This document shows positions 5,352 to 26,638 of a DNA stretch of 34,080 nt, one piece after another (the stretch's first letter is position 1; each line of letters starts with the position of its first letter). The DNA is from Octopus bimaculoides (lineage: Eukaryota): NCBI RefSeq assembly GCF_001194135.2, contig NC_068985.1, positions 126,288,448 through 126,322,527 of the forward strand, read 5' to 3'. The position numbers and the translations under genes are program-made. The notes under the pieces are model-generated. The model ran no database searches. It saw nothing but the letters and a program-made list of their open reading frames with translations, and was not told where the DNA came from.

Positions 5352-5494
5352 CTGATGCCGTAGAACACTTCGAATGGTGCCTTTGAAGAGGAATATAACG
5401 AAGTTGTAAAACCAATTATAAGTGTCGAGGTCAAAAGCGATATCACAACTGCAATGTGTTGCTTTCACATCAGGAGCTCCGTGTGGTGTTTTTG
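5352..5494 (-). CDS. LBP/BPI-family gene, internal coding exon D (143 nt, phase 1 to 0)
   Basis: Acceptor TCTCTCTATTTTAG|, donor CAG|GTAAGC. Encodes (T)KTPHGAPDVKATHCSCDIAFDLDTYNWFYNFVIFLFKGTIRSVLRHQ, with the 'G.P.V...CSC' disulfide Cys and 'W.YN' of the BPI1 domain. Confidence 0.92.
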
Positions 5495-5569
5495 CTAAAA
5501 TAGAGAGAGAGTAAAAGTTATGTTTTATCGAAATTATTGCAATAGAGAGAAAAACAACAGCATTAATAC

Positions 5570-6908
5570 CAGGCGGTGACAGGAGCAAAAAATTAATCAT
5601 GAAAAGTTGCCGAGTCTGCAGCGCAGTACCACGAGAAGGAATCCATGCTATCCAACAGCATCTTGGGACACTGGACTGACGGACCGATTAAATGACTCGG
5701 AGTTTGGTTAGGTCCAGATCCTGGTAGACAAAAGCAGGAAAGAGGTGACAAGCAAGATGATTAGTCTGACCCAGAAATGGACCAAGACCAAACTATCTCT
5801 GAAAGGTCGGGTGAGGGTTAATTATGACTATGTCGCATCTTTCATCTACTACCACCGTTTACAAGATCCGCTCTTCTGCTGCTATCTTTTTGATTGAGCT
5901 GCAGTCTTGGTTCAAGCCTAAACCGAGGCAGGGCGCCTGACACCTAGAATGCCTTCAGGCGCTCACAGACCTCAACCATTCTGTCAGAGTGGTCTGTGGC
6001 TGTTTCACCATGAGGGTCTACAGACGATTAGTGGGTTTTAAGAGCTACTAATTATCAGGGGAAACTGAGCATCGATGAAAATCAAATAACCGGTCCGTTC
6101 TGGAGGACTTTGCACCAAGCCTCATGAACAATTTCCAGAAATTCTCTGACTAGGCAATGCTACCGGAGAAGTGGGAATAGCATTTCGGGTTCGGAGTAAA
6201 CTTTACAAGCGTTATAGTGCCTGTCCAAGATGCGCACAGAGTGACGAAACCGTCTTGCACGCGCTCGTACAGGGTCCGTGTGTTGCTGACTTGTGGAGAT
6301 ATGTTGAACTGCTGCTATCACATGTAGGAAAGATCTGGCTATCGGCTGACATCGCTGTACAGATCGCCCCGTCACCTTCCTTTGGCCGAGAAGAGCAGGC
6401 AGTTTTCTACTGTCAGGTTACTATGGCGAAGTAGGATAGTATGATGTGTGGTGGCCACGACTGAAATGACTGTAGACAGACACTTTCCTTTACGGCCAAG
6501 TTCTCATCAACGTGTTCAAGTTTCACTTGGAGAAGAAAGTGAGGTTGGAGAATGGAGGTACTGCCTCCCACCACTGAATTTGTAAAAAGGTTGGGTATTT
6601 ACCCAACCTTTTTACAAAGAGAGAATGACCCGAGTAAGTGGCCCTGCTCTAATCTTGCACTTGTATGCTGAAAATACAGAGGAGAGAGAAATACTTGTAG
6701 TATCATCTCTGGCTAAAAGGGTGACTTGGGACCTAAGGGATTGTCTTTCACCTCTCGGTGGTGTTTCTCACCTTAACGGGGAATGTTGCTGTTATAATTC
6801 TTGTGTTAATTGTCCTTTTATTGTTTACGCGTGTTTTAGTAAATCCTCTCTGTCCTTTGTGTTTGTATCGAGCTGAACGTCTTTGCAGTCCTTGAGGCCA
6901 ACAAAGAA
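5570..6908 (+). mobile_element. L1/Tx1-clade LINE, 5'-truncated (RT C-terminus, CCHC zinc finger, 3' UTR)
   Basis: Remnants 'GAK..', 'EVTSKMISLTQKW', 'KLSLKGR', and zf-RVT-like 'CPRCAQSDETVLHALVQ'. 3' terminus tgcagtccttgaggccaacaaagaa at 6884-6907. Confidence 0.82.
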
Positions 6909-6934
6909 AAGGTCGGTATTTTTTTGTATCTCGT

Positions 6935-7020
6935 TGTTGTTATCGTCTTTGTTGTTGTTGTTTTTGTTGTTGTTGTTGTCGTCGTTGTTGTTGTCGTCGT
7001 TGTTGTTGCGGTTGTGGTTG
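6935..7020. repeat. Compound (TTG)n/(TCG) microsatellite
   Basis: Direct reading. Confidence 0.9.
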
Positions 7021-7041
7021 TTTAGTCCTGGATCAACGTTG

Positions 7042-7073
7042 AACAGACCAACAGACCAACAGACCAACAGACC
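7042..7073. repeat. (AACAGACC)x4 tandem repeat inside a dispersed-repeat remnant
   Basis: Direct reading. Confidence 0.85.
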
Positions 7074-23960: not shown

Positions 23961-25440
23961 AAGGCGGCGAGCAAAATGCTTAGCGGTATTTCATCCGTCT
24001 TTACGTTCTGAGTTCAAATTCCGTCGAGGTCGCCTTTGCCTTTCATCCCTTTCGAGGTTGATGAAATAAGTACCAGTTGACCATTGGCGTCGTTGTTATC
24101 GACCGGCCCCTTTCCCCAACATCACAGGCCTTGTGTTTATTGTAAAAAAGGATTAATTCTCTGTCCAAGGAAAAATACCTTACGGTATTTCTTCCGGCTC
24201 TTCACATCCTAAGTTCAAATCTCACCAAGATCAACTTTGCCTTTCATCTCATCAGATCTGATAAAATAAAGTTCCAGTCAGACACTGAGGTTGGTGCTAT
24301 CCACTAACATTCCCCTCCAAATTGCCAGCCTTGTTCCTAAACCAGAATCAATTATTAATTTTCCATCGTTAGATTGTAAGACTAAATAACCTCGGTATAC
24401 TTCTTTTAGTTCTTTACATCTTGAGTTCATATCCCGCCAAGTAAACACTGTTTTTCATTCTTTCGGGGTCGATAAAATTAAGTTTTCGTCAAGCATTAGG
24501 GTCGATATTATCGACTATGCCCTTCCCCGCAAATTTCAGTTCTTGGACCCAGATTAAAAGAGATTATTAAGGGCAGTGCGTTGGAACTGTTACAGTGTTG
24601 GAAAAATTCTTTGCAGTACTTCTTCCGCACCGTATTCAAATCCCAACGAGGTCAACTTGCCTTTCATCCACCAATCGATAAAGCAAGTTACCAGTCAAAT
24701 ATTGGGGCCGATGGCATCGACTAACCTCTCCCTCCTCCAAATGTTAGACATTCGAAACAATTATCAGGTTTCCTTTCACCATTCTCTTTCACAATATTAT
24801 GTTACAGTGGAAAGCAGCGAGCTGGCAGAAACGTTAGCACACCGGGCGAAATGCTTAACGGTATTTCGTCTGTCTTTATGTTCTGAGTTCAAATTCCGCC
24901 GAGATCGACTTTGCCTTTCATCCTATCGGGGTCGATAAATTAAGTATCTGTTGCGTACTGGGATCGATCTAATCGACTGGCCCCTCCACCAAAATTTCGG
25001 GCCTTGTGCCTAGAGTAGAAAAGAATATTATATTACAGTGGAAAGCGACGAGCTGGAAGAATCGTTAGCACGCCGGGCAAAATGCTTGGCGGTATTTCGT
25101 CCTTCTTTACGTTCTCAGTTCGAATTCCACCGAGGTCGACTTTGCCGTTCATCCATCCGGTGTCGATAAAATAAGTACCGATTGGGGTAGATGTCGATAA
25201 AAAAATTGAGTCGATAAAATAAGTACAGAGTGGGGTAGATGTAATCAACTTATCCCCTCCCGCGAAAGTGCTAGCTTTGTGCCAAAATTTGAAACCAATG
25301 TTATATCATGGTGGAATAACAAAGTCGTTAGAATCATTAGAGCTTCGGACGTAATACCTTGTATTTATTTACAGTCCCTTAGGTTACGAGTTCAAATCGA
25401 TTAAATATACCTTGGTGTTTGATCGGTATTTTTTTTATCG
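23961..25440 (+). mobile_element. Head-to-tail array of 6-7 family-1 SINE copies
   Basis: Copies start near 23961, 24165, 24385, 24570, 24812, 25043 and (degenerate) 25325. Each has the '(t)gagttcaaat..cc..gaggtc.actttgcctttcatcc' core. Confidence 0.88.
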
Positions 25441-25819
25441 ATTCCAGTGTAATAAAAGAAAAAGTTGACCGTAACAGAATTTGATTTCTGACTCGCACAG
25501 GAATAGAATTAGTTATAATACTGTATTTGGCCAGTCTTCCCATAAATTCTATCTTTCCAATGCCTTAATTATTCCAACGTCCCGTATCAGACCAAACAGC
25601 AGAATGCCAATAACAGTAAATGGAAACAAACAAAAAAAACTGCAAAACGTAACAAAGTTATGGGGCTGCTGTGAAATGTTCTCTTAAGTAACAACGAGAG
25701 CTACTTAATGATTATGTAATATACATATATATATATATATATATTTATATATATAAGGGGCATTATATATATATATATATATGTATATACAAATATCATA
25801 TCATATCATATCTGACGTC

Positions 25820-26400
25820 TTATAAGTACACTTTTTACATCCATCACACGAACGCAATGTGTCCCAGAAGATTGACCTGCATCTATAAACACGAGGTCAG
25901 CGTTTACGTTACTGGAAATTGATGGGTGAAGAAAGGGTCAATGAAAATTGAAGAACATTTTATAAACTTGTGCTCAGCAATAATATAATACTCCATCTCT
26001 AACTTGTAAACACGATAAGAATATAAGATCACTTGCACCAAAGATGGAAGTGGTCTATTCTATTCATATCACTTGAGAGAAATGTTTCTTCTATATGAAG
26101 TTAAGACGACCAAATCATTTCATAAACTTCGAACGCTATCTGGCCGTATTCGTGCTACATAGAGGGAAGCATGTTTCATGCCAAGCCTATCGCATAAAGC
26201 TCATTGAAAAACAACAAAGATGGAAGCTGTTGTTTCACAATCACCTTTAAAACTGAAAAGCTTTCTGCCAATTCAGTTGAGTGCATGCGGATCGTTATCT
26301 CCCAATGATCTGTGGAAAGCTATCTGACAATTATACATAAGAGGCCTGTCTGAGGATTATAATGATCAAGTATATATAATCCTAAATAATATATTTAATC
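25820..26400 (-). mobile_element. Possible Ty3/Gypsy pol remnant (RNase H end to integrase zinc domain)
   Basis: Weak, correctly ordered motifs on the minus strand: 'IGRK', 'SFK', 'DRLGMKHA', 'LQVRDGVLY', 'FWDTLRSCDGCKK'. Many stops. Confidence 0.4.
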
Positions 26401-26480
26401 CCAGATACCCTGTACCTGAAAAAAAGAGGTTATAGGCAGATCTGGAACACCTCTGCTCAGTTAAACAACGATAACATATA

Positions 26481-26525
26481 AATGATGTTACAATGTTACA
26501 ATGATGTTACAATGATGTTACAATG
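26481..26525. repeat. (AATGATGTTAC) minisatellite, about 4 units
   Basis: Direct reading. Confidence 0.85.
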
Positions 26526-26538
26526 AATTAAAGCTTAC

Positions 26539-26638
26539 TTTGTCAAGCTGTAGTAAGTGTCGCCAGTGTGTACGATGTTTGGAATTTTTCGTATTGACTT
26601 GAATTGTTCATGAAGTTGTGTGAATCCAATAGTGGAAG
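26539..26638 (-). CDS. LBP/BPI-family gene, internal coding exon A (100 nt, phase 1 to 2)
   Basis: Minus strand: acceptor GCTTTCTTTTGGCAG|, donor AA|GTAAGC. Encodes (A)STIGFTQLHEQFKSIRKIPNIVHTGDTYYSLT(N), like the BPI helix and 'IKIPD' region after the 'KGLDYA' motif. Phase matches the exon at 20437. Confidence 0.88.

Follow-up and report, generated by a model that had tools for sequence, protein, structure and literature searches.

Four consecutive exons of a probable LBP/BPI-family gene with long, repeat-rich introns in a 34-kb window of Octopus bimaculoides

In the defence against Gram-negative bacteria, LBP/BPI proteins stand at the front line, both sensing and killing the cells, and in squid they help to manage the beneficial Vibrio symbiont. 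The basic hairpin of their N-terminal barrel has been tied by established work to the binding of the lipid A moiety of lipopolysaccharide (LPS). Among cephalopods, the Euprymna scolopes proteins EsLBP1-3 and EsBPI2/4 have been described as two-domain proteins that possess a signal peptide, a very basic isoelectric point (pI), an LPS-binding region and conserved cysteines (PMC5380838), and a BPI transcript is known from the haemocytes of Octopus vulgaris (PMC4199593). Here we describe a stretch of 34,080 nucleotides (nt) from contig NC_068985.1 of Octopus bimaculoides, referred to as the window in the following, whose minus strand very probably carries part of a eukaryotic gene of the LBP/BPI family (TULIP/BPI fold), namely four internal coding exons that follow one another and are separated by long and repeat-rich introns. 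The encoded fragment fits each of the features described for cephalopod LBP/BPI proteins that is visible in a fragment, with the comparison being made by description only. Since genes of this family have been amply described in animals, cephalopods among them, the gene fragment is an ordinary and conserved one and adds at most a new member to the family, not a new kind of system.

The exons had been proposed in a sequence-only reading of the window, and the peptide given there could be located on the minus strand as four pieces (26638-26539, 20437-20306, 18411-18338 and 5494-5352). The four exons are real, and in the direction of the gene they are:

26539-26638, minus strand: exon 1, 100 nt, phase 1 to 2, peptide xSTIGFTQLHEQFKSIRKIPNIVHTGDTYYSLT-N
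20306-20437, minus strand: exon 2, 132 nt, phase 2 to 2, peptide LYVDKLTKPHGSIAFVPGHGLKWSMTIPNAQITGNWRYSKKLW
18338-18411, minus strand: exon 3, 74 nt, phase 2 to 1, peptide F-FRVGDAGSMKINMPETHVEIIIKL-T
5352-5494, minus strand: exon 4, 143 nt, phase 1 to 0, peptide KTPHGAPDVKATHCSCDIAFDLDTYNWFYNFVIFLFKGTIRSVLRHQ

Together they comprise 449 coding nt, and their phases (1-2, 2-2, 2-1, 1-0) join into a single open frame with 149 complete codons. All eight splice sites are canonical AG/GT sites. The acceptors possess a polypyrimidine tract and end in ttttggcag, tttcttttcag, tattttctag and tctattttag directly at the exon border, and the donors of exons 1-4 are GTAAGC, GTAAGT, GTATGT and GTAAGC. The sequence thus bears out, at the exact coordinates, the earlier claim of four minus-strand exons with canonical splice sites and chained phases. 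The frame of the spliced peptide in that reading also holds, but its leading alanine does not, as the last intron base had been read into the codon and the true residue, encoded by xCT, is serine, proline, threonine or alanine. The gene had further been called cryptic; it is real, but the word means only that a list of bacterial-style open reading frames (ORFs) cannot display a spliced animal gene. Translation cannot start in exon 1, since the frame is closed by a stop codon 10 codons upstream and no ATG is found in between.

The family assignment is carried by the Pfam profile PF01273, the N-terminal domain of LBP_BPI_CETP, which the spliced peptide matches with 53.5 bits (expectation value (E) 3e-14, profile positions 30-156 of 168) and which has a curated cutoff of 28.8 bits. 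If exon 1, 2, 3 or 4 is left out, the score drops to 42.6, 24.0, 41.9 and 27.5 bits, respectively, so that each exon contributes 10.9-29.5 bits. Exons 2 and 4 match consecutive segments of the profile even on their own (exon 2 with 16.8 bits at profile positions 49-88, exon 4 with 18.9 bits at 107-156). In total, the exons encode about 150 residues, which span the N-terminal barrel domain roughly from position 11 to position 156 of its 168-position profile. A sequence search of the PDB gave human BPI as top match (E 2.6e-7), collinear over BPI residues 42-168, followed by LBP (E 2.6e-4). The fragment thereby shares the N-terminal barrel of human BPI (PDB 1BP1/1EWF) and mammalian LBP (PDB 4M4D), although the identity amounts to only about 25-30% and two 2-residue insertions are found at the hairpin. 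In the hairpin, R70, K73, K74 and R79 align to K92, K95, R96 and K99 of BPI, with the first three being encoded by exon 2. Cys116, encoded by exon 4, aligns to Cys135 of BPI, and N33 aligns to S55 of BPI, which is consistent with a conserved position of the first intron. The 149-aa fragment is cationic, with a pI of 9.5 and 17 lysine and arginine residues versus 10 aspartate and glutamate residues. Both the score above the Pfam threshold and the best structure matches, BPI and LBP, support the earlier assignment to the N-terminal BPI domain.

A relative of the locus was reached through a word-indexed protein search, in which the sole match, P0001, is a 95-aa bacterial-style ORF over a homologue of exon 4 that lies on a 233-kb ENA contig, termed L001 here. 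The searched database is evidently devoid of annotated animal proteomes, because a calibration search with the mariner fragment of the window (described below) yielded no more than three ORFs, all of them unannotated and from metagenomes or read assemblies, and the missing of a full-length BPI match is therefore uninformative on the annotation status of the gene. On L001, the following exons were found:

3906-3979 of L001: homologue of exon 3, 74 nt, same AG/GT positions
10137-10279 of L001: homologue of exon 4, 143 nt, same AG/GT positions
10708-10771 of L001: next exon of the N-terminal domain, 64 nt, phase 0 to 1, 'ICEKAVAVINDSGYEQIVQFP', preceded by ttttag and followed by gtaaga
16568-16744 of L001: exon of the C-terminal domain, 177 nt, phase 0 to 0, which by itself matches PF02886 with 23.8 bits versus a cutoff of 23

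The homologues of exons 3 and 4 have the same order and orientation as in the window and are separated by a gap-free intron of about 6.2 kb, while the introns of the two loci cannot be aligned. Over the 72 codons of both exons, window and L001 share 68% amino-acid identity, with a ratio of non-synonymous to synonymous divergence (dN/dS) of 0.11 and a saturated dS of 1.9. Because of this low ratio, the identity and the exactly kept boundaries, exons 3 and 4 are protein-coding and under long-term purifying selection, and L001 would represent a distant species or an old paralogue. None of the SINE-like (short interspersed nuclear element-like) repeats of the window has a copy on L001, which argues for L001 belonging to a different genome. 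The 64-nt exon, starting with ICEKAV, lies 428 nt downstream of the exon-4 homologue; with it included, L001 scores 30.0 instead of 18.9 bits against PF01273 and is matched up to position 166 of the 168 in the profile, and when it is grafted onto the window peptide, 65.4 bits are reached. This exon aligns to VCEKVT of BPI, in the region of Cys175, and to VCEMIQ of LBP. It had been predicted from the window that the next exon would begin in phase 0 with a cysteine as second residue, and for the family this has come true in L001, where the cysteine of ICEKAV takes the position of BPI Cys175 and the exon adds 11-12 bits. As the 177-nt exon passes PF02886, the L001 homologue is a two-domain LBP/BPI-type gene. 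A mariner-like element, consisting of an HTH_48 match and a DDE-like ORF, is located at about 13200-13940 of L001 between its 64-nt and 177-nt exons.

The exon structure can be compared with that of the vertebrate family. Genes of the vertebrate BPI/LBP/PLUNC-like type possess near-identical exon sizes, which were compiled as follows (PMC3253384, Table 3):

Vertebrate exon 3: 100-115 nt
Vertebrate exon 4: 105-135 nt
Vertebrate exon 5: 156 nt
Vertebrate exon 6: 64 nt
Vertebrate exon 7: 61 nt (the range is also given as 61-64 nt)
Vertebrate exon 8: 92 nt
Vertebrate exon 9: 174-180 nt

The vertebrate BPI/LBP/PLUNC (BPIF) genes share exon sizes and phases with the window, where exons of 100, 132 and 74+143=217 nt stand against 100-115, 105-135 and 156+64=220 nt and are equal to these modulo 3 (1, 0, 1). 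Exon 1 of the window corresponds to vertebrate exon 3, being 15 nt below the commonest vertebrate size of 115 nt for the exon before the hairpin exon, and exon 2 corresponds to vertebrate exon 4. Exon 3 resembles the first half of an exon 5 that is split as in CETP, and exon 4 equals the second half of exon 5 (85-88 nt) fused to exon 6 (64 nt). The further exons on L001 continue this pattern, with 64 and 177 nt versus 61-64 and 174-180 nt in vertebrates; exon 9 of chicken BPI/LBP is, with 177 nt, of the size of the L001 C-terminal-domain exon (PMC3253384). From the family pattern, the next exon of the window gene is therefore predicted to be about 61 nt long, to run from phase 0 to 1 and to encode the partner cysteine.

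These comparisons bear on one alternative, a chance arrangement of open segments with splice-like borders. A 34-kb sequence does offer a large search space of open segments that are bounded by AG and GT, but such an arrangement would not be expected to reach a Pfam E of 3e-14 with every segment contributing in the correct order, nor to have two of its segments kept with exact boundaries in L001 while the flanking introns differ, nor to fit the exon sizes of the family. We regard chance as refuted by the Pfam score, the leave-one-out scores and the exon conservation in L001, and its probability as negligible.

Apart from the shared sizes, two differences from the vertebrate BPI/LBP/PLUNC genes are found. 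Neither the window nor L001 possesses the intron that separates exons 5 and 6 in vertebrates, and the vertebrate exon 5 is unsplit, whereas in the window and in L001 it is split after 74 nt. Among the vertebrate members of the family, a split exon 5 is found only in CETP (71+88 nt; PMC3253384), and this split can be likened to that of the window, with identical phase. The intron positions of CETP and the window agree within about 1-2 codons by size and phase arithmetic alone, whereas there is no detectable sequence affinity. An alignment to CETP for testing the homology of the extra intron was not obtained, as CETP was unreached by sequence or profile searches and the PDB query with the short N-terminal part is uninformative in this respect; a literature search for the exon structure of invertebrate LBP/BPI genes found nothing relevant. 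We think it rather unlikely, though worth stating, that the gene might be an unannotated lineage-specific LBP/BPI paralogue that keeps an ancestral intron otherwise retained only in vertebrate CETP (exon 5 split after about 71-74 nt, phase 1) and lacks the vertebrate exon 5/6 intron. If this were true, the CETP-type intron would be older than the protostome-deuterostome split and would have been lost in the vertebrate lineage of BPI, LBP, PLUNC and PLTP. The work is otherwise routine gene finding, and the exon sizes common to an invertebrate gene and the vertebrates, together with the CETP-like intron, are of mild evolutionary interest.

The same intron could be taken to mean that the gene does not encode an LBP/BPI protein at all, but a non-immune lipid-transfer protein or carrier of the BPI (TULIP) fold, either similar to CETP and PLTP or a single-domain protein of the JHBP/Takeout type. 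PF01273 is indeed not restricted to LBP and BPI but includes CETP and PLTP, the intron that follows the 74-nt exon is reminiscent of the CETP-specific split, and a weak match to JHBP/Takeout (PF06585) was obtained. However, this match reaches only 14.1 bits and stays below the cutoff of 29.2, and PDB searches at E up to 10, whether started from the single sequence or from a small profile, found chains of BPI and LBP only, with CETP not being reached even by the profile. Furthermore, the basic hairpin residues and the high pI are kept, and the presence of a C-terminal BPI domain in the L001 homologue speaks against a single-domain protein. We hence consider a lipid-transfer or carrier protein improbable and an LBP/BPI-type protein much better in agreement with the data.

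The long distances between the exons of this LBP/BPI-type gene are due to the following introns:

20438-26538, minus strand: intron 1, 6101 nt, with many SINE-like repeats and microsatellites and ORFs without family match
18412-20305, minus strand: intron 2, about 1894 nt, the length being uncertain through the gap 19513-19934, with a 156-nt inverted repeat
5495-18337, minus strand: intron 3, about 12843 nt, with the gaps 7983-8343, 9499-9628 and 15752-15761 and retroelement-like debris

Six assembly gaps are present in the window (2888-3253, 5007-5045, 7983-8343, 9499-9628, 15752-15761 and 19513-19934). Four of these six lie within the exon span and all four are intronic, one in intron 2 and three in intron 3, as listed above. 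The closest of them is 372 nt away from the exon at 20306-20437, and the reading frame crosses no gap, so that the gap estimates affect intron lengths only. The alignments to PF01273 and to human BPI are continuous over every junction with no block absent; therefore, no exon of the N-terminal domain is hidden in the gaps within the span, and the four pieces have the expected order and orientation. Each of the gaps is bordered by simple repeats of the type (TA)n, (CA)n or (TG)n, as is expected for unresolved microsatellites inside a scaffold, and the window as a whole is very rich in microsatellites, namely (CT)n, (CA)n, (TA)n and (TCTA)n. For the annotation of fragmented and repeat-rich genomes the locus is instructive, since exons that lie 6-13 kb apart are easily overlooked.

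While BPI and LBP consist of two domains, the window shows the N-terminal domain alone, and the signal peptide, the partner cysteine and the C-terminal domain are not seen there. Downstream of exon 4, in positions 1-5351, the next exon was searched for by tblastn of all minus-strand open segments against L001 and by enumeration of AG/GT-bounded candidates that run from phase 0 to 1 and contain a cysteine, and the next exon together with the C-terminal domain (PF02886) by Pfam on stop-masked frames and by tblastn with the peptides of the fifth and the 177-nt exon of L001; none of these searches gave a result. A 17-bit match at the left edge (3-161, minus strand) was rejected, as it has no phase-0 acceptor, enters a (TCTA)n repeat and shows no Pfam match. 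Upstream of exon 1, in positions 26639-34080, no credible signal-peptide exon was found by a scan for ATG, hydrophobicity and a phase-1 donor or by a motif-guided scan. These scans agree with the earlier statement that neither the signal-peptide exon nor the next exon is visible in the window. There is also no second copy of any of the exons in the window, and thus no tandem paralogue there. For the 3' exon that is missing, possible locations are the sequence before position 1 and two gaps outside the exon span (5007-5045 and 2888-3253), the first of which is of particular relevance:

5007-5045, strand not applicable: assembly gap, 307 nt downstream of the exon-4 donor, candidate site of the missing next exon (61-64 nt)

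Several of these observations count against the view of a functional LBP/BPI gene and have to be weighed here. The gene is incomplete in the window, as 5.35 kb of downstream sequence does not contain the next exon although it is only 428 nt away in L001, and 7.4 kb of upstream sequence does not contain a signal-peptide exon. The dS is saturated, so that the dN/dS reflects long-term constraint and not present-day integrity, and LPS binding and an immune function would follow from homology and family membership only. It could thus be argued that the window contains a truncated or recently inactivated LBP/BPI copy, a pseudogene or fragment that looks intact since decay has only begun or since only its 3' or 5' parts were lost. 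Besides the two missing exons, the repeat-swollen introns fit to such a copy, with intron 3 having 12.8 kb in the window versus 6.2 kb in L001, but long introns are the rule at this locus. The absence of the next exon is likewise less telling than it seems, as the gaps 5007-5045 and 2888-3253, whose true size is uncertain, could hold it. In addition, the frame is open in all four exons, eight of eight splice sites are canonical and the dN/dS is as low as 0.11. We therefore see only a small chance that the copy is truncated or inactive and favor that the exons belong to a regular LBP/BPI-family gene.

Such a gene would continue beyond the window in both directions, with the signal-peptide exon expected right of position 34080, and the 61-64-nt exon with the disulfide-partner cysteine as well as the C-terminal-domain exons expected either before position 1 or within a gap. 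In BPI the disulfide is formed by Cys135 and Cys175; the equivalent of Cys135, Cys116, is present in the fragment, and its partner is expected on the missing next exon. The product would be a secreted, cationic, two-domain protein of the BPI fold, the N-terminal barrel of which may use its basic hairpin to bind lipid A or LPS, with the conserved disulfide having a stabilizing role. It could serve in antibacterial defence or in the management of microbes, as is the case for EsBPI2/4 and EsLBP1 of the squid. A catalogue of such paralogues is useful for the comparative immunology of molluscs.

The remainder of the window is dominated by repeats and remnants of mobile elements. Upstream of the BPI exons and on the opposite strand, a fragment of a mariner/Tc1-type transposase is found:

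31466-31852, plus strand: mariner/Tc1-type transposase fragment (PF01359, E 5.6e-23)

A dispersed SINE-like family with elements of about 160-250 nt and the core ...GAGTTCAAATTCCGCCGAGGTCGACTTTGCCTTTCATCC...GGGGTCGATAAAATAAGTACCAG... is represented by at least 9 copies, most of which lie in introns or in flanking sequence. Neither ARAGORN nor Rfam called a transfer RNA in this family, and the Rfam and transfer RNA scans of the whole window gave nothing. The copies are located at:

2244-2405: SINE-like copy
13900-13991: SINE-like copy
23965-24111: SINE-like copy
24199-24269: SINE-like copy
24432-24523: SINE-like copy
24793-24985: SINE-like copy
25024-25184: SINE-like copy
33578-33817: SINE-like copy
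29223-29377: SINE-like copy, inverted

Two minus-strand ORF regions, 21381-22787 and 27808-28450, resemble retrotransposons by eye (they contain, for example, ...WLDYKKAFDS... and ...DIAVLCETRL...); these ORFs, which lie within intron 1 and before exon 1, respectively, gave no Pfam match with an E of 1 or below. A weak zf-RVT match of 19 bits is present at 6171-6434 on the plus strand. Overlapping ORFs occupy both strands of a GC-rich block of intron 3 at about 9700-11400, where the GC content is 52% against an average of 39% for the window. One of these ORFs (10078-10386, plus strand) has a weak CCHC zinc-knuckle match of 20 bits, while the other ORFs of the block are without family match; the block may be a gag-like retroelement remnant. 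Finally, an inverted repeat with arms of 156 nt (18816-18971 and 19195-19350), which are 92% complementary and 223 nt apart, is located in intron 2 and looks like a miniature inverted-repeat transposable element or a hairpin.

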